From Lytechinus pictus (taxonomy: Eukaryota): DNA of 64,000 nucleotides. The position numbers and the translations under genes are program-made. The notes beneath the pieces are model-generated. The model saw only the letters and a list, made by a program, of their open reading frames with translations. It was not told the origin of the DNA and searched no databases. The stretch is from positions 17,732,001 through 17,796,000 of the forward strand of contig NC_087257.1 of the NCBI RefSeq assembly GCF_037042905.1, in the 5' to 3' direction. Below, piece after piece: positions 751-62,536 of this stretch. The number at the start of each line of letters is the position of its first letter. The first letter of the stretch is position 1.

Positions 751-1875
751 GAGATTTTATCTAAAAATACAATTATATTAAATTTGTAGGTTTAAGAGTA
801 CAATTATCAGGCTACCATTCTCTTGAATTGGAAAGCAAGAGGAAACCAACTATGTGAATTACAGATAATTTTTTCTTCTAAATCCACTACCGTCTTTGGC
901 TGGTCTCTTTAAAGAGAGATCTATCAAATCCTCGTAAATCTCATCACTTAATGCTACCGTATCCTCTGACTCAAACCAACATTCACTGAAAACCAGAAGA
1001 GGTAAATCGTCTCACTTCGCTTTACGAATTCATGTTAAAATGTATATGGTCTTACGGTTTCTCCAGCAGGCTGTGCAAAATTTACATAAAACTCATTTAT
1101 AAAATTGAATGCATGCATTCAAACGACTACATGTACAGTATATGCTGCTGATACGTAAATGACAGATTTTCATTAAAAACAGTGTCGCTTTGACAATGAC
1201 ATTGCAGTCAGTTTCTTCATTTTCTTGTCAAGTATTATAATTTATGGGTTAAAAGTAAATAAAAAATTCAAGTAAATAAAAAACATCATACATGTATTAA
1301 AGAGTGACAGTAATATGCATAGCATGCGGAAAAAGATTAGCTATAAATTGACTTGATATAAACATGGAGTTTGTATCAGAGGCAATCGTGCACAAACCTT
1401 TATTTTGCGCTTTGCTTGGCACATGCTACATAAGAGATAGGATTTATACACAGCTGATTGGATCGAGGATCGTGGAAATTCATCAGGGATTAAAATTATG
1501 CTGATTTTGAAATGTCTACGATCAGTCAAACTGCAGCAACTTAAGGTACATGTATTCAGCTTCAAATTCAGCTGCTGTTTTAGCACAACTAATGACATTT
1601 CAACAATTCCCTTGCATTTTACTTACTATTATGCATGTTTGTTCAAAACATTTTTTAGCTACGATGTATATTCATGCATTCATTGTTTTCTTGAAAATTC
1701 ACTGCGCTTCTCTTTGCATACAGAGGACATTGTGCAAGTTTTTCATAGAAAAAAATTATGACACTGATGGATTTCCATCGAGTTATGATTGTTCGGATCA
1801 ATCGTAACTCTTTGTAAGACGGGGCCCAGATTGAATTCATAGTATTTTTAAAACAGCATTGGTACTATCCCTTAA

Positions 1876-2811
1876 GGACGTTCCACAGTTATGTTTGTGC
1901 GCATTATGATCTGCGCATATTTTAAACTCTGCGCGCTGACGTCACAATGGATGAACAAGTGATTAATTAGCTGTGAGTATGAGCTGAATTTTCTCATCAA
2001 CTGCACTCTAACTGCAGATCCGATGCGTTATTTTATGAAGCTAAGAAAATAGAATTATTCCATGGACCATTTTTTAAAATATCTCTACAGTTTCAAAATA
2101 CTTTACTCTGCAGTGCTGCCAAGAATCACGAATATATCCCCGAGTTTGAATAAATGGTAGAGTGGTTTTGATTTTTTCTTCACATAGATACAAAGCATTC
2201 GGCGCATTTTTGGTGTTTTAAAAAGCACATTTGCTCTAATAAAAATGCTGATAGTTTGAAAACAAGCACATGAACCCCTATTTTTTAACGTTTGTACCTC
2301 TTAGGCATACCTTCCTCTACAACTTTGCAAATTTTGGTGAAAATGACATGGATTTTGAATAAAGTGCAGCATTTATTGTACTTTTGTAGTTTGTTATTGA
2401 TATTTCACATTTTTTAGATTGGGTTTTTGTTATCTTTTACGCCATTTTTAAGAACTGACAGTGCTGTTAGACTTAAAATTGCAAACAAATAGCACTATAA
2501 ATAGATTCTCCATTCTAACGATACAATTATTAACTCTCTTGCGAAATTTGATGACTTTTTCATGTATTTTGACTGAGTAATAGAGATTTAAATTCATTGT
2601 AGTAATCTTGCGAGGTCTAAAAATGCCAAATTATTTTGAATGCGCAATTCTTAAGAACATCAATTTGGGTGAACTTTGAAGCTCTATAGCAAAAAATCAA
2701 GCACATGGACCTATGTTAATTTTTGCATATTTCGAATATTAAGGTTCTAAAGTATCTATGTGCAAAGTTTGGTGAAAATGACATGGATTTCACTTTAACT
2801 GTGGAACGTCC
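1876..2811. mobile_element. Non-autonomous DNA transposon, Kolobok-like (TTAA TSD, GG termini)
   Basis: Perfect 16-bp TIR GGACGTTCCACAGTTA / TAACTGTGGAACGTCC, flanked by TTAA at 1872-1875 and 2812-2815. Internal direct repeat GGTGAAAATGACATGGATTT near 2336 and 2771. No ORF. Confidence 0.85.
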
Positions 2812-5800
2812 TTAATGCAACTTTTTGCAATCAAATACAAAAATAAGTGTGAAAGTCACCTTCCCAAATGTAAATCGATTACTTATTTTCATGTTCATAT
2901 CTAGAGATGTTAATATATGGAACCGGGGGACGGGGCGGGGGGGGGGGGAGAAGCTCCCCTTCCCATTTTTTTGCCAAAACCATACATGTACATGTACAAA
3001 ACAAACTACATGTACCATCTGACTGTGATTTGTTGTATGGTCAACCCCTCCCCATGGATTCAAAAACATTCCAAAGCCCCTGTATATTATTGTATAATTT
3101 CTTATCATGGATTTGAGAGTGAGAAATTATAGAAAAAGGAAAAATGCTATTTTGTAGTGGGATCTTATTATCAAAGAAAGATTGAATTCTGTCCTTATTC
3201 CATATCATTAAACATTGCATAAAAAGTTCAAACTCATCAATATTTTAGCAGTCAGATGCATCAGCCTTATATAATTTCTCTTCAAGAACGAGATTGAAGA
3301 AATGCTCCCTGAATGATTAATTGGAATTCTTCGTTTAGAGCAAGAACGCGATCTTCATCGGCCCAGCGCCACCGTAGCTTGCGGCACTTCTTGACCCGAT
3401 ACTTGATCTATTATGAGCAGAGACAGCTAGGGGCAAGGCTCAAAATTTACAATTCCATGGCAGCAAACCATTTGGAAAATTGGTTAGAACTATATCCCAT
3501 TAACTCATAAAGCATGGCGACGAACGTTTATTTTTATTACAATTTCCAAAATAGGAATCCATGTTGCATAAAATCGTTGCTGTTTGGCTGATGTTGAAGT
3601 CAAGAGCGTTTCTATGGTAATGGTGACCTTTAAAAGGAGGTTAACATAGGCATTATTATGAATAGCTATTATCCATCATAATCCATGTTCTATCCAGGCT
3701 AATGCTAACCTTTTGTTTTCTGATTACTATTCAAAAATTGAACTGCCAATATGCAGTTCTTTTCCCTGTTCACATGTAAAAATTAATGAATAGTTTATTA
3801 ATCCCTTTTCAAATAATTGTGAAGGGTATTAATAAAGAGGGATTTTTCTTTCTACTACATGTACCTGGTTCTACTTACTTTTGGTACACGTACAACACCT
3901 AAAATGTACTCGTGTTCATAATCATCCTCTTTGAACTACATGTATATTTTTCTTGGATCTTTTTATTTTTTATAAAAAAAACATCAAGTTCCAGTTTACC
4001 AATGTATAACATGAAGAGAGTCACTGGCTTTATTTAAACCCATATTCAAAGATTTATGCCCTAATTAGAGAAAACATATTTCATTATACATGTACTTTTT
4101 CATTATGGTTAAATTTTTACCAAGATATAAGAGGAGCAAGATGGCAAATTAATCAATCATTTCTAATTGAGCTTCATGTATATTTCTCAAACTAATTATA
4201 TTTTGTGCACTGAGGTAATCCAAGCATTCCAGTTTTCATATGGCATAGTCATACGTCAAAATTTCAATTGGATTATCGTAGGAGATATTAAAGTAAAAGA
4301 AAAAGATTACACTCACATGCTTCGTTGTGATGTTATGACAAAAATCAAGAAGTTTATTTACAGGTGTATCAATCAATTTCTTTTCAATTTCAACATAATT
4401 TCCATGCACTACAAATTCAGCCTCACTGATAATGTTTTCTTAGAAATTGTTTTGATTTGGGGATAATTTATTTTTTCTGAAACAAAATGATTATCCTTTC
4501 TGCATTCATTTTCTCTCTGTCACGACCCCCCCCCCCCCCCTTCCTCTCTCTTTCTTTTTATTTTTCCTTCTCTGTGTACATTTCTATCTGTTGCATTTAT
4601 CCCACTTTCTGATGTTTTCATAGAATGTTCACATGTTCTCCTTTTATCATTTATCTTGGTCTTTTTAGAAGAAAAAAAGTCTGTAAACATTTACATGTAC
4701 ATGTATGTATGAATAAATGCACCAATTTGAAGAAAAACCCAAGATAAAAATCTGTGAGTTATATTGCTTTGCAAATCACACAGAATATATGTTAAATACA
4801 CATATTACATTCAGCTACTACATGTAGTAGTACTTATTATTGAAGAAAATGCCTCGACAATGTGAATTCAAGATCTGCCTGAAAACCTGTCATCGCTGTC
4901 CAGAGCCATTGTAAACAACTGAATCATGAAATTTGCCACAACCAAATCAATGGCCAGTAAAATCATTTAAGAAAATAAAAAAGAGAAAGCGGAAAAGCAG
5001 CAGACAAGTGCGAAAATGACGATAATGCAATCAAAAGCCTGAGCGAGGAGAACGCTCTCCAGCGAACCATACAGACATACTTCGCCCACTTCAACATAAT
5101 TTTTTCCCGACACACGTTAATAGCAGTCGTGAGTGGTGCCTGCACGGATGACATCCGAGACAGTATCTCGTGACTTTTGCCTCTGTACAGAGCAAATTTA
5201 TAGGCTTTTATGTCATCTCGTATTTCATGATTTCTCTGAGTTCTTTATAAATTGAGGGAATGGAGAGAACAACTCTGATTTAAGCTTGTTGAAACATTGG
5301 ATGATGTTGACTGCAACTGACAAGAAGATAAAATTTGGCTTCAGGGGGATGGGAAATATTATCCAGTGAGCGTGATCATTATCGAAAATGAAAATAATAT
5401 CAGACCCTAAACAAGCAGTAGCCCCGATCTCCAAGTTTCTCATTAAGTCTAGAAAGAAAGCATCCTGAGGCATGTTTTTTTTTCAGCAATATTTCATACT
5501 GTGTCTTTCTTTCGTTTTTTTTTTGGGGGGGGTTGATTACTTTATTATAATTTCCTGCTTTCCTAAGTTTGAACCTGAATTTCAAATGAAAGCTAAACCG
5601 TTACATCACATGAAGTATAAAGATCATCATTTTCACTACCCTTCATTGTAAACCATAATCATTATTCAATAATCAAGTGCTATTATAAAAGTATTAAAAA
5701 GTAATTATTCTTATGATTACGATTATTATTATGATTATTTGCCTAAAGGCTACCATACGGGCTAGGGAAAACACTGGGTTTATTCTGTAAAAAAAAAGGC

Positions 5801-43914: not shown

Positions 43915-46900
43915 CAGGGGGGTGAAACTCCGCTTCTGCATCCGGTTAGACATGGGGAAATTTTGGAAGGTCAAAAGTGCACACTGCTCCCATTTTTCAC
44001 GTACAAGCCTATGGACACCGCAACTTCATGGCACACCAGCGAAACGGAGGCGTGGTCATAATTGGCCTGCGCGCACAGCGTAAAAATATGCAAATAAGTA
44101 TATTGTCACTAATCAGCATAATGCGCGACGTGATTGAATATGAAATGAATTCATAGAGCATGCGATTATGGTTGGTTAATTGGTTGGTTGGTAGATTATG
44201 TCATTCATTTCCCCCCATGTATTCATCTTTTATTGTTTACATATTTTTTTCTTATTATCCGTCGCAATTATTACTACATCAATTAATACAAATTTTTATT
44301 TGCAAGCTATTTCCCAGGAAGACATGGAATGGAAGCTTGCAAGGGATTCATTAATGGGGCTGAACTTAGGGATCTAATTGTTCTGTTCATCACTGCATAT
44401 AATTTATTTTCATTACACATCATGAAGATCCAGATCCATATTCCATGATTATTTGTATGTTTGTTTTGTGTGTTTTTTTTTTTTGGGGGGGGGGGTCGGC
44501 GGTTAAATGCTTAACTTACCAAAGATACCTGAGCAAGAGAGCAAATCAATCAGATGGTCATTTTGACTTTATTTTTAAATTGAAATGAACAGTCTAGTGC
44601 AAATCTTACAAAGATTTTTAAAAAAATCTGAGTTTGGGGTGGGAGCAAAAGACAGCCCAGTACCCCCCCCCCTGCATGAATTACCTCTCATCAAGGCTAT
44701 CTTATAAAGGTCCCTTCCAAACAAAATACAATTTTTGTACCTGCCCATCCCCCAAATCTCTATATCGATCCCCCCCTCTCTCTCTCTTCCACACACACAC
44801 ACATACCAGCATACCACATGATTGTGCGAGCAAACAATTATTCTCATGTCATTTTTATATCTATCCCACTCTTAAATCAAACTCATTTATCTCTTCAGGA
44901 AGAATATTTGATTTTGCTGCCCCTGATCACAGTATGCCATGTTGCAATGGCTTTTATGGGCTATCTTGCCATGCATGGTATTTTGATACTTTGATACTCT
45001 TACCTGTTGTATATACCGTCTAGTATTATACCTGACAAACAAAATCAATCAACCAACCAACCAACCCCAACCAATCCACCAATCATATTCCAGTCATATA
45101 GAAGTATTCATTATCATCACCATCATCTAAATAGTGCCATTTCATCACAACACAGTTTGGTAGCAATGACATCATCATCACATATATTTCATGCAATATG
45201 AATTGGATTAAATAAATCACAAATATCAAAATTATAAAGTATATTTCAAAATAAAATGTTTATTAAGGAATCAATTTTCAAATTCGTGATTAAAATATTC
45301 CTATCCTTTTTTTCTTGCCAAAGCATCACATAACATCAGCAAAATGCATATAATGAATACAACAGAAATTGCAAGCCTGTTACAAGGGAGGGGATGTAAT
45401 TTTTTTTGGTAAAATCTAGAGAAGAAAAAAATTATGTATTCACTTTCATAAGTATTGATAAGCCTTATATAGTCAATATAAGGGGGCATCAAGGATGTCA
45501 TTAAAGAAAAAGTAACGATATACCTCTCTCTCAAAGTCGGTTACTCAAATATCAAGTCATTTTTTCAGCATTTCAGGCATGTATGTTGATTGTTGAATAA
45601 CCCAGAGCTCAGTAATAATAATAACAATAATAATATAGGTATATTTACCAGGGTAGCCACTTCAGTTTCGAAAACTGTTCTACCAGCGGGCTCTGCTATT
45701 ATTATTAAATACCCATTCTAAATTTATTATATTACCAGAATACAACCTATCCTTTTCAAACTACTAATGTCATTAAAAGTTCTTTCATTACTATAAGTAT
45801 TACATTTAGATGATTAGAACATTAACAGATGTGTAGTTCAAGCAACAATCAATATGTATCAAGTTGACACATTAATTGAAATTAATTCTATATTTAAAAT
45901 GTGTAATTGCGATGAAGTAATACTTGTTATAAAACTTGGCCTACATATTTCTGCTCAATCTGCCCTTGTGATACTCAAACAGCCTGCAAAACCTGCATGG
46001 TAAACAAAAGAGAAAAGAACAAAATGAGCTGCTGATATAAATTATTCTTACTCTTCTAGTCCAGTTTATTAAGAAGTTTTAAACTTTTTATTACTCTTCC
46101 ATGCAATATTCTTTAGTTAATGCACATGTATAATTTTTTTACTATAGCCAGATAAAAATCATAGATCAGTATTTATAGATCATTCTTCATAGAACTTTTT
46201 ATGACTAAATGTGCAAACTCATTCAAATATATCATAAAATTACTCTCAATATTTTGTCCTTTTTTATTTGTCTACAGAGTAACTGGCTTTTAAAGTGATT
46301 TATGTATGACTAATATAGATAAAAGATATGGACAATAAGTATGCATTGATGATAATGGAAATACTGGTGAATCTGAATCTAAATAAATATGAACTCTCAA
46401 TTTAGCTTTACTATATGGGATAACACAATTCAGAAAAAAAAAGCTGCTATAGCCCCCCCCCCCCCACAAGGAAATAGGGGCCTTTTTAAACAAAAACAAG
46501 CATACCTTGGAAGTTTTCAGTTCAGATATCCTGTTCCTCATCAGATTGTAACTCTTGGTGATAAGCAAATGGTAGTTGACTTTGTACTTCTGACTGGGCT
46601 GGGACAGCTAAGAACTTGATCCCATTGGATCTGCCATTTAAAATACACACAATACTTTACAGTTTAGAATTTTAGAAGTGATAAACAAAATTCCTCTCTT
46701 TAATTTTTTTTTCTTCAAAATTTCCAGCTAGTCATATCCTCAGCCTATGAATAATCCCAACTAGAAAAAAAGCTGGTCTAGACCCAAAGCTTCTTTCTCT
46801 CTATATCATGTTCTACTGAAATAGGCATACCTGGCTGTTTCCACTGACCATCTTCATTGTTAACAAGAGTCAGTATTGGTTCAAGCATACGTGGCCTACT

Positions 46901-58810: not shown

Positions 58811-59106
58811 GTATTTTAGCATCCACTCCGCAGACGCTTTCTGAAACGTTCAGGATCTATTGACAATGCCTGTCAAATCAGAACCGACAGATTTAGAGGT
58901 CATTGTCGAAAGTTGTTGGACCGGGACAGCATGTCTTAAGATTCGGACCGGACGAACAATTGCAAACATGTCGCTTTTCCAGAGTGCAGGACGACACTGC
59001 AGTTTTGATTCACTGATTTTCGACAAAGGCTGCGTTTTTGTAAAGGGCTTTTGACTAAACATTATCTGCGTTATACAAAGCGTCTGTGAAGTGGATGCTA
59101 AAATAC
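58811..59106. mobile_element. About 300-bp MITE
   Basis: 30-bp TIR GTATTTTAGCATCCACTCCGCAGACGCTTT / AAAGCGTCTGTGAAGTGGATGCTAAAATAC with two mismatches. Confidence 0.8.
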
Positions 59107-59388
59107 AGGCAAGCCTCTCCCCCCCCCCAAAAAAAAAAATAATAAATAGATAAATGAAAATAGTCATCACTTGAAATAAAGGGCGTTTCTTTCGTGTCCA
59201 AAAAAAATTGACAAAAAGGGTACAATTCTTTGTTATGGGGTACGCAATGAAAGCATTTGTGCAAAGTTATATTTTCAAATTTTACAGGATGCATGCACCT
59301 GCACCCCCCCCCCCCGCCTCACCATGATCCACTCCTGAATTTTTCAAGGATTCAATTTTCTATACAAGAAAAGACGCGCATCTGTAAT

Positions 59389-59536
59389 TCACACTGTGTT
59401 CTTGTCTTCGGATACCGTGGAGGAAAGAACAGTACTCTTGGTGGCACCATCTCCTTCGTCTTGGTCAAATAGAGGGCGCTGCTCAATACGTTTCCTCTTG
59501 AACATGTCTTTGACAGCCTTCCTGAATTGAGGATAC
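59389..59536 (-). CDS. Class A GPCR-4, last coding exon (helix 8 and C-terminal tail)
   Basis: aacag|G TAT CCT... encodes (R)YPQFRKAVKDMFKRKRIEQRPLFDQDEGDGATKSTVLSSTVSEDKNTV*, matching paralog tails RYPRFREALKDLF...PIFG and RYPKFRRAICDMF...PLFG. Confidence 0.9.
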
Positions 59537-60099
59537 CTGTTGGATTAAAGCAGGATATACATTCCAGAACTGTACCAAATCACAATAAGAGCCCTTTATC
59601 AATGTGAGGTCTTCACGGTTTAGGCCTACCTTAAACATTCTTATTTGTTGTTTCCATAAAAATGGCAAAAACATACTTGTCGAAACGTCGAATTTATGTG
59701 GCCCTTTCGGAACCAATTATTTACGCCCACCCCTCCCCCCCCCCCAAAAAAAAAGAGAATAGGTCGATGTGGAGTACCTTAAAAGCTTCCACTTGATTTA
59801 TTATTTGCCATGGAAGCCCTCGAAGGTACGTACTTCATCACTGGATATGATTTTTTTTCTCAAGTTAAAGATACATTTGATGTAGGGGGCCAAGTAGAAT
59901 ATGTTCATTTGATATTGGTACAATGCTTGGAGCCATGGCTATTGAAAAGCTGAGTTAAGGATACTTATCAGTCCTTTGGAGAAAAAGGTCTACAATTTCT
60001 CTTGAGGCATAGTATCATGGTGATGACACAAAAAGCAGTATAAATCTAGGCTTGATTTGTTCAAATGGGAAAAAACGAAATGATAAACATAATGTATAC

Positions 60100-61166
60100 C
60101 TGGCAGTATAGATGATCGGGTTCGCGCACGAGTTGACGTAAGCCACGACTACGAAGCTCCAGTAGATATGTTGATCAAGAAGTTGGTTTCCCCTGACGAT
60201 GATGATCTGCGTGATCAGCAATCCAAGCTGAGCTGGTGTCCAACTGAGGAGGAACGTGATGATAACAATCAGAACCAGATTAATGACACGGTTGCGAGCA
60301 ATTCGAAGGCGATATGCCGGATCGCTTTCATCCGATCTGCTGCTCTCTTTGTTGAAGTTATCCGCTTCTCGGTGAAGTCGGCGAACCACCGCGAGTTGGG
60401 TGACCACCATGATCACGACAGGAGCGAGGAAGGATGCGGTTAGATAAGCCACCGCGCTTGGAATCTGAACACCCGGTGGAAGAGGTTTGTAGGAGCACAG
60501 GTACCGAACGGGGTCCACGTACGCGAAGAATGCCAGATAGGTTGTGATCGCCGCGGAGAGGATCCACAGCGCGATGACGTACATCACCGTGCGGGACTTG
60601 GTAAATGTGAAGCGGTAACGTATCGGATACATTACCGCGGTATACCGCTGCACGGATAACGCGGTCAGGGTGAACACTGACGCGGTTATGCAGGTGCGGA
60701 GAAGCGCGTCGGTACCGAATAGGTAACAGTAGAACTTCGTCATCCACAGATACGGCGTCGTTAGCAAATATGGACGCGGTAATATAATGAGGGACGTCAA
60801 CAGGTCGGCCGCTGCCAATGCCGCTATGAGTGTATCGGTAGAGCTTTTGGCTTTGCGTCTGCTGTAAAGAACCACGATGACTAGAAGATTACCGGAGACA
60901 CCAACGAATCCAAAGATCAGTTGAAAAAATCGGTACCAGTCGCGGAATTTGAATTCATGCCATATCCAGACAGGAACATGGGGTCGCTCTGCTTCAGTCG
61001 AACCCTCTGTGATGTTGGGGAACTCCGTGAACACTTTTTCTTCGAGTACGGACATGGTTTGTGTCATGTAGGTCGAATCGCTGCCATTGTTGAAGTCAGT
61101 GGAATAGCAGGAGTTAGAGAATGACAAGATGCAGATCAATGATGTGAAAACGTGGAGCAGTGCCAT
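60100..61166 (-). CDS. Class A GPCR-4, main coding exon (signal peptide to TM7)
   Basis: ATG at 61166 after an acceptor cacag|; leader MALLHVFTSLICILSFSNSCYS; motifs GVSGN, LAAADL, SVQRY, SWTP, NPIIY; phase 2 donor CAG|GTATAC. Confidence 0.93.
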
Positions 61167-62536
61167 TCTTCTCCTGTGAGAAATAATTTGACATATGTAA
61201 TATTTAGCCCTATGCATCTTGAAAGATTTTGATTAAAGTTTTTTTTTCAATTTACAATGAATATTTTTACTCATGAAGGATATTATACGGGTACATAAAT
61301 AATGGACTGTAGTCAGCATGTTACATTATCTGCATGGTGGTAAAACACAACTTTAGCTGACCCTGAATATTCGGAGGAAACAAAATCTGAGAGAAACGGA
61401 GGTGATATTGGCAGAACATGCAGAATAAGGGCTTATAACTGCTAAAACTGCTGACGTCCGTTGTTCTGGGGTTCGATATTCCAAATATTTCACACACTGC
61501 ATTGCGATAACAATTCACTTGCTGTGATAGGTCATATTTTCGATTACATTTTGCAACAATATGTATTCAGTCTTATTCTAATTCATTTACATATTATTTG
61601 CATTTCACCACGCTTATATTCTTTTCACATTCATACTTAGAATTACGTTCATAACAATTGAATGTATGAAATAAGTTTGAGTTGTGTGCACAAAGTCGAA
61701 GAGAAGAATTTCCACAAAATTATCTGAAGACCTATCCCTTGGAAACACGACGTGATTTATACATGCATTTAGACTTTTCGCATCATAATTAGCGAATTGC
61801 TTTCTATTTTGTAAATAGTAATTGAACCATATAATGCCATATTATACATTTCCTTAAAAAAAGAAACACCAATGAAGGTAAGAATGGTGACGGTAGGCCT
61901 TTAGATATTTATCTATTTTTGTGAAGGCTTCTGAAACGATAAATCATTGTATTATTTCATTTTAACTGAAACACTATTGTATTTGAGGAGTCGCACTAAT
62001 GGCTCAATCACTTTTTACAAAATTTGATAGAATAAATCCTGTGCCACTTTCACGTGGTATCCCCAAGGAATACCACGTGATATATAACGTTTATTTTCGT
62101 TGTGCATCAATAATCTTTTAAGTTCTTCAAATTGTTTAGATTTCTAACTCTACTATGGGAATAACTACAATTTAATTGTAATGAATATTATATTGACTTA
62201 AGCATAAGCATAATATTGTAACTTAAATGAATAGGCAATTAGTGTAAATAAAACGAAATACATATTTTCTTATAAAAACATTATGTCCTATATCAGAACA
62301 ATAATTATTTCTTGGGATGTGTATTGACTATTGACAACAACCTGACATGAAAATGGACAAATGCAATCAACCCTCGCTACCATCAGTTCGGTAAAAAGGA
62401 GGTTGGGTCACACAACTGAAAAAAACGGTAAAAGACCATCTAAACACAAAAAGTCATTAAATTGCTTTACGATCTTGATATTTAATCGGTGCGAATATAA
62501 ATTACATCTCCATCAATCTTCAAAGAGTTACGTTTA

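Follow-up and report, generated by a model that had tools for sequence, protein, structure and literature searches.

The closest described cases to the intron treated here come from two kinds of gained spliceosomal introns. The neo-introns of Daphnia pulex have been explained by a model of staggered double-strand-break repair (PMC4202315; reviewed in PMC3443670), and the repeats that flank them range from 4 to 12 bp (PMC4202315). Introners are transposon-derived intron families and have been reported in the sea urchin Strongylocentrotus purpuratus (PMC12130899). The rhodopsin-type G protein-coupled receptors (GPCRs) of sea urchins are, according to Raible et al. (2006, Dev Biol 300:461) as cited in PMC2700072, rapidly expanded, tandemly clustered and mostly single-exon. 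Here, we analysed a 64-kb stretch of the genome of the sea urchin Lytechinus pictus (contig NC_087257.1, positions 17,732,001 to 17,796,000, forward strand; hereafter the window), which carries four tandem same-strand receptor paralogs, GPCR-1 to GPCR-4, and for which a preliminary description made from the sequence had proposed an intron gain in GPCR-4. Our results make it very probable that this gene contains a single old, derived and spliced U2-type phase 2 intron, located between the NPxxY motif of transmembrane helix (TM) 7 and helix 8 and inserted at an AG/GT proto-splice site.

Coding exon 1 of GPCR-4 comprises 1067 nt (355 codons plus 2 nt) and ends with ...ACT GCC AG, and exon 2 begins with G TAT CCT; in the minus-strand reading, the phase 2 break falls inside the Arg codon AG/G (Table 1). 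The donor lies in the context ...ACTGC CAG/GTATACATT... and the acceptor in the context ...TCCAA CAG/GTATCCTCA..., and joining of the exons yields a protein of 404 amino acids reading ...NPIIYTAR/YPQFRKAVKDMF... across the junction. This spliced protein is colinear with GPCR-1 (IYTARYPRFREALKDLF), GPCR-2 (IYTISNAEFRLAVKSVL) and GPCR-3 (IYTIRYPKFRRAICDMF), confirming that these three paralogs run unbroken through the site as had been described, and the length, coordinates and frame first given for the intron agree with the sequence. The preliminary description had also warned that the track of open reading frames (ORFs) gives GPCR-4 a wrong C-terminus. Indeed, the mechanical ORF 60015..61217 continues for 28 codons into the intron, and the false C-terminus obtained by such a naive reading is corrected by the splicing model.

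The GPCR-4 intron is real, of the U2 type and precisely spliced. One 241-nt contig (depth 5.3) of run X1, a small run (89 Mb) supplied as contigs, maps to 59377-59532 and 60096-60180 with 0 mismatches and skips exactly 563 nt, and the 7 letters at its joint, which fit either side, are the CAGGTAT repeat that flanks the intron. The depth of X1 is 0 over the intron bins, while coverage is seen over exon 2 with the 3' untranslated region (UTR), over the end of exon 1 and immediately upstream of the ATG. The RNA label of X1 is a guess, and we read the run as RNA because 89 Mb of DNA could not give a depth of 5 on a unique locus of an 812-Mb genome. Confirmation of the junction in RNA had been called for at the outset, and the X1 contig joins the exons exactly, in agreement with the RefSeq models of two Lytechinus species; in L. 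variegatus, XP_041478021.1 is spliced at the identical junction, the gene extending over 1671 nt and encoding 371 amino acids. The UniParc protein P0031, of the type of a more distant urchin (hereafter species X), is spliced across the same junction, and spliced protein models thus exist in three species: L. pictus, L. variegatus and the species X type.

Two observations qualify the evidence for splicing in L. pictus: the in-species support consists of a single spliced contig from one small run with a guessed RNA label, and GPCR-4 drew no reads in the raw RNA-seq runs X6, X7 and X8, of which about 1.9 Gb each were read. The zero count in X6-X8 is uninformative, saying nothing about splicing or about expression elsewhere. 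Together with the 28 codons by which the ORF extends into the insert, these read-free runs could nevertheless be taken to favour an insertion that is not spliced out and cuts the receptor short after TM7, leaving a pseudogene or a short-tail isoform. We regard this as extremely improbable, given that a spliced X1 contig exists, that exon 2 is in frame and conserved across species with a dN/dS of ~0.2, and that the read-through peptides into the intron differ between species instead of being conserved.

Because the intron starts with GTAT, a U12-type intron was considered and rejected. Introns of the U12 type are marked by strong conservation of the 5' site, /GTATCCTT, and by a TCCTTAAC branch site at a distance of 10-15 nt from the 3' site. 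The GPCR-4 donor reads GTATACAT (GTATAAAT in species X), with +5/+6 other than CC, and a search for the U12 branch site near the acceptor found none. A scan of 59300-60300 against Rfam for a hosted RNA likewise gave no match at E <= 1.

The L. pictus genome (812 Mb) was searched in six frames with the spliced L. variegatus ortholog as query, in which the junction lies at residue 322, giving 826 candidates, of which 111 matches were scored. Some 95 paralogs, at 27-39% identity, are open in a single piece across residue 322 and GPCR-4 alone is split there, while all 29 paralogs that were extracted are colinear through NPxxY and helix 8. As to more distant relatives, Diadema P0006 and P0009 are single-exon and intronless, Diadema P0005 has an N-terminal intron only, the intron of Amphiura filiformis P0004 lies ~22 residues upstream of NPxxY, and snake NMBR, a bombesin-type receptor, runs from TM6 to the tail in one last exon. 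An intron at the same position in outgroup receptors, which the preliminary description had named as the observation that would speak for an ancestral intron, is absent from all outgroups examined. A maximum likelihood tree rooted on two non-echinoderm receptors gives the GPCR-4 clade a very long stem (1.83 substitutions/site) and nests it among intronless members, with a support of 84-85 in the Shimodaira-Hasegawa-like approximate likelihood ratio test (SH-aLRT). With ~95 unbroken paralogs and all outgroups checked on its side, the proposed intron gain is upheld as a derived state, and judging from these comparisons the intron was in all likelihood gained in an otherwise uninterrupted family.

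A point against this polarity is that the approximately unbiased (AU) test does not reject a placement of GPCR-4 as sister to the other 36 family members (p = 0.35). The nesting of GPCR-4 is therefore unproven, and the gain rests on parsimony (one event vs two) and on the outgroups. The same p value is what could be said for an intron ancestral to the family, kept only in GPCR-4 and lost, for instance by retroposition, in the ancestor of all other sampled members; single-exon GPCR families do commonly originate by retroposition. However, this history needs two events instead of one, the Diadema and Amphiura members as well as the bombesin-type receptor are without an intron at the site, and the best tree places GPCR-4 inside intronless clades, which together make ancestral presence very unlikely. 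The intron of the Amphiura filiformis member (L039, gene 1501-3687) measures 1233 nt and is its own; it is possibly a further intron of independent origin in this family of mostly single-exon genes.

With regard to age, the L. variegatus ortholog has an intron of 555 nt at the same position and phase, 87% identical to that of L. pictus. Species X (Logan contig L008; protein 78% identical) has a 785-nt intron at the same codon and phase, with the donor ACCAG/GTATAAAT and the acceptor TTCACCAG/GTATCCCC. The interior of the species X intron is unalignable to the Lytechinus intron (~46% identity), and conservation between the two is confined to 8 nt at the start and ~19 nt at the end. Over the GPCR-4 coding sequence, divergence at synonymous sites (dS) was 0.10 for L. 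variegatus and reached 0.71-0.82 for species X. A recent gain is thus ruled out, since the intron is common to L. variegatus and to an urchin at dS ~0.7. This distribution shows that the intron is old and fixed and was present before the split of Lytechinus and species X. An exhaustive HMMER protein search recovered no GPCR-4 ortholog between 84% and 40% identity, all others being at most 40% identical, and the protein searches found no GPCR-4 ortholog lacking the intron, the matches from outside Lytechinus and species X again reaching at most 40% identity. The gain can accordingly be placed no more closely than after the GPCR-4 lineage arose and before Lytechinus and species X parted. As a further observation, L. 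variegatus CM031027.1 has two annotated GPCR-4 copies 6.3 Mb apart (L007 at 21.46 Mb and L047 at 15.18 Mb), and the intron is present in both (555 and 526 nt, 95% alike); the L. pictus genome shows only one copy.

The CAGGTAT sequences noted at both junctions in the preliminary description are present, running along the gene from 60102 to 60096 and from 59539 to 59533. The in-register repeat across the junctions amounts to 3 + 4 = 7 bp in both Lytechinus species and to 5 + 4 = 9 bp (ACCAGGTAT) in species X, and is 1-4 bp in a control set of four introns from related receptors. The donors of these controls are GTAAGA, GTGATC, GTGAGT and GTAAGT, as compared to GTATAC/GTATAA in GPCR-4. The intronic part of this donor is weak (+4 T, +5 A, +6 C/A), and its bases at +3 and +4 match those of the downstream exon. 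Such a match would fit a duplicated exonic GTAT. Moreover, a proto-splice site can still be found in the family, as 4 of the 29 intronless paralogs have AGG/T in the same register, one of which (L030) reads GCA AGG TAT CCT.

We infer one gain on the long GPCR-4 stem, in which non-coding DNA would have entered the AG/GT proto-splice site of the Arg-Tyr codons (AGG TAT), a sequence that persists uninterrupted in intronless paralogs. Pairing of the exon-side CAG with U1 would offset the poor intron-side donor, and exact removal at CAG/GTATAC...AACAG/G restores the family-typical ...IYTAR-YPQFRKAVKDMF.... The 7-9-bp repeat and the odd GTAT donor would fit a target-duplicating insertion, and the source of the inserted DNA would no longer be recognisable. 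That the CAGGTAT repeat was created in this way, as the target-site duplication (TSD) of a transposon or by fill-in of a staggered break, is a serious possibility, to which we give slightly less than even weight. A fuller version, held more tentatively, is that a 9-bp target, ACCAGGTAT, in Thr/Ala-Arg-Tyr codons was duplicated by the entry of foreign DNA, that the acceptor AG and the non-consensus donor GTAT came from its two copies, and that splicing together with coding constraint then preserved this footprint over tens of millions of years. If true, this would be one of few old animal introns with a birth mechanism still readable in the sequence.

Several considerations weigh against a duplication. 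The CAG at both sites, the GT and the exonic G/TAT are all expected from the splice consensus and from the coding of R-Y-P, and the weak donor needs the exonic CAG anyway, leaving only the intronic +3 A and +4 T as unexplained bases. These two would occur by chance with a probability of ~0.04-0.07, an estimate taken from general metazoan splice-site frequencies and not from the L. pictus genome. The case was, furthermore, selected because of its repeat, and ancestral states of 7 bp and of 9 bp require equal numbers of changes. In Drosophila, repeats of >=5 bp flank 26% of old and 25% of new introns (PMC3443670). We thus agree with the caveat already raised in the preliminary description that CAG/GT is also the plain splice consensus, and consensus together with coding explains most of the repeat.

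Much of this argument can be turned into a history without any duplication, in which blunt-end filler insertion, reverse splicing or intron transposition brought the intron into the AG/GT site, and CAGGTAT/ACCAGGTAT is a coincidence of splice consensus, pyrimidine-tract composition and Arg-Tyr-Pro codons. Intronless paralogs already have (C/A)AGG TAT CCT, so that the exonic half needs no special cause, CAG/G acceptors and CAG/GT donors are consensus, repeat-flanked conserved introns are frequent in other animals (PMC3443670), and our searches of the intron found no ends of transposable elements (TEs), no terminal inverted repeats (TIRs) and no copies. On the other hand, GTATAC/GTATAA is unusual at +4 to +6 and shares its +3 and +4 bases with the downstream exon, a better donor would be expected of an intron copied from another place, and the repeat reaches 9 bp in species X as against 1-4 bp in the four control introns. 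A gain without duplication is therefore plausible, though in our judgement somewhat short of probable. A decayed, transposon-derived introner like those of S. purpuratus, with CAGGTAT (or its longer form) as the TSD, is unlikely. TSDs of 7-9 bp are typical of several DNA-transposon superfamilies and of retroposons, and the age of the intron would have erased its likeness to sister copies. Introner families are, in addition, reported in a sea urchin (PMC12130899). However, no second copy of the intron exists in the 812 Mb searched and the species X intron is unmatched too, the sole repeat homology is an internal fragment of 52-58 nt that cannot be the founding element, and the TIR-like match is not conserved.

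The searches behind these statements were as follows. In the L. pictus genome, copies of the GPCR-4 intron were limited to its own locus and five partial matches of 51-68 nt to an internal repeat (counts from the genome copy searches being lower bounds), a genome search with the species X intron gave no match, and blastn of the intron against the window found T/G-run tracts only. The preliminary description had suggested an introner or transposon-copy origin and a search for copies of the intron in unrelated genes; this origin found no support, as the intron is single-copy except for the internal fragment, and no copies were found beyond the matches to that fragment. The fragment derives from the inner arm of a miniature inverted-repeat transposable element (MITE). 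It is separated from the donor by 383 nt and from the acceptor by 122 nt, and because of this internal position and of its partial deletion in L. variegatus we consider it a passenger or filler and not the founder. The foldback (palindromic) MITE-like family of ~255 nt to which it belongs has at least 1429 first-look candidates in the genome, its copies being 87-91% alike and matching on both strands, with a full copy for example at L044 (G000:C3:20258364-20258618).

The 12-13-bp inverted match that had been proposed as a TIR remnant does exist as a 12/13 match, between CAGG-TATACATT and the reverse complement of AATGTATATCCTG, but comparison with random pieces of matched composition gives it a P of ~0.05. 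With its 3' arm set 14 nt inward of the acceptor, the match is out of register with the direct repeat, and it is not kept in other species, there being a different best match in L. variegatus and none in species X. The interpretation as a TIR remnant was consequently rejected, the match being at chance level, not conserved, and with ends that do not abut the repeat. Tandem exon duplication as a source was also examined. Local alignments of the intron to exons 1 and 2 on both strands did not rise above dinucleotide shuffles (31-173 of 200 shuffles scored at least as high). Two candidate matches, of the exon-2 start with 59950-59964 (13/15) and of the 5' region of the intron with TM6 codons (21/29), were rejected as they are not colinear with each other, and the former weakens in L. 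variegatus.

Compared with the described systems, the GPCR-4 intron resembles the Daphnia neo-introns in being lineage-specific, in lying at an AG/GT site of an otherwise uninterrupted coding region, in having an unidentifiable source of inserted DNA and splice sites weaker than those of old introns, and in its repeat, which at 7-9 bp falls inside the Daphnia range. In contrast, the Daphnia introns are young and polymorphic, and the duplication is proven there by empty alleles, whereas the GPCR-4 intron is fixed and old (common at dS ~0.7). As no ortholog free of the intron was found, the GPCR-4 repeat is inseparable from consensus and coding constraint. With the S. purpuratus introners it shares the host group, sea urchins, and a TSD would supply AG and GT on either side; unlike them, it has neither a multi-copy, near-identical family nor conserved termini, and its TE homology is internal only. 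The RefSeq models XP_054766958.1, XP_041478021.1 and XP_041478968.1 represent the same gene with the same exon junction; the intron is thus already in public gene models, which annotate it and are silent on its origin. It is another instance of a known phenomenon, being neither recent nor an introner nor evidence of a new mechanism. Its interest is that of a clean, datable coding-region intron gain in an otherwise single-exon deuterostome gene family, with controls for splicing, paralogs, outgroups and orthologs at two depths, and it shows how little trace of the birth mechanism survives in an old intron.

As to the receptor itself, its sequence marks GPCR-4 as a predicted rhodopsin-class member of a massively expanded, largely single-exon sea-urchin GPCR family. 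The Pfam profile PF00001 (7tm_1) matches residues 92-353 with an E value of 1e-37 and 130.6 bits (cut-off 30.5), covering profile positions 1-260 of 260, and the NPIIY of TM7 is followed by the helix 8 YPQFRKAVKDMF, as in the rhodopsin family. Its relatives in the L. pictus genome (>100 scored, 826 candidates) show profiles of the 7tm_1, Srsx and Srx types and single coding exons; the likeness to the expanded urchin GPCR set lies in these single coding exons, in the many genomic relatives and in the four tandem same-strand paralogs. Unlike that set, GPCR-4 has gained an intron within its coding region and is set apart by a very long branch, and its orthologs occur, within the databases searched, only in camarodont-type urchins. 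The best database match is L. variegatus XP_041478021.1 (96% identical), in whose 90% cluster the L. pictus model XP_054766958.1 was found; the latter is 98.9% identical to the spliced protein of the window, differing at 4/367 residues. All three RefSeq models are named 'trace amine-associated receptor 7h-like', which is an automatic similarity label and putative only, and the nearest non-echinoderm matches are peptide-receptor-like at ~27% identity. The gene-wide dN/dS is ~0.2, and the C-terminal tail encoded by exon 2 is conserved in L. variegatus and species X.

Table 1. Features of GPCR-4 and of its intron, in positions of the window
Feature	Positions	Strand	Remarks
GPCR-4 coding exon 1	60100..61166	-	Met to first 2 bases of the split Arg codon; TM1-TM7 including NPIIY
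Donor-side CAGGTAT copy	60096..60102	-	exon CAG + intron GTAT; plus-strand ATACCTG
GPCR-4 intron, U2-type GT..AG	59537..60099	-	563 nt, phase 2, 38% GC; donor CAG/GTATAC (weak), acceptor AACAG/G
T-run/G-run tract (T9 G11 AGGGG...)	59727..59757	-	within the intron; adjoins the MITE fragment on its 5' side
MITE inner-arm fragment	59659..59716	-	52-58 nt, 80-85% identical; ~255-nt foldback family; partly deleted in L. variegatus
3' arm of the proposed inverted match (AATGTATATCCTG)	59551..59563	-	judged a chance match
Final 19 nt of the intron (branch/pyrimidine/acceptor region)	59537..59555	-	15/19 identical to species X
Acceptor-side CAGGTAT copy	59533..59539	-	intron CAG + exon GTAT (G of Arg, TAT of Tyr); plus-strand ATACCTG
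GPCR-4 coding exon 2	59389..59536	-	third base of Arg, helix 8 YPQFRKAVKDMF, C-terminal tail, TGA stop

Some minor observations concern the surroundings of the gene. Upstream, X1 contigs cover 61168-61335, directly before the ATG (61166), in the putative 5' UTR of GPCR-4, and an acceptor-like ...tttctcacag/gag is found at ~61174 despite the X1 coverage there. Downstream, positions 58900-59150 of the window are heavily covered by repeat-derived RNA reads from X6-X8 (90-95% alike) and by X1 contigs of very great depth. This is a highly repeated, hairpin-forming element and not expression of GPCR-4, the hairpin being indicated by many opposite-strand joints and loose ends. The T-run/G-run tract of the intron belongs to a class, T(6+)G(6+), with five members in the 64 kb as compared to 0.03 expected from shuffles, at 5519-5530, 20583-20594 and 44479-44490 on the plus strand and at 59123-59134 and 59740-59751 on the minus strand. 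Two of the five lie in GPCR-4 (in the intron and the 3' region), both on the sense strand of the gene, and the flanks of the tracts are mutually unalignable, which shows that the tracts do not belong to a single repeat family. Finally, GPCR-1 (27204-28436) has a near-identical copy on a different contig at L019 (G000:C6:14881326-14882309), 93% identical over ~2.8 kb including flanks. The two copies reflect either a recent segmental duplication between chromosomes or a haplotype placed wrongly.

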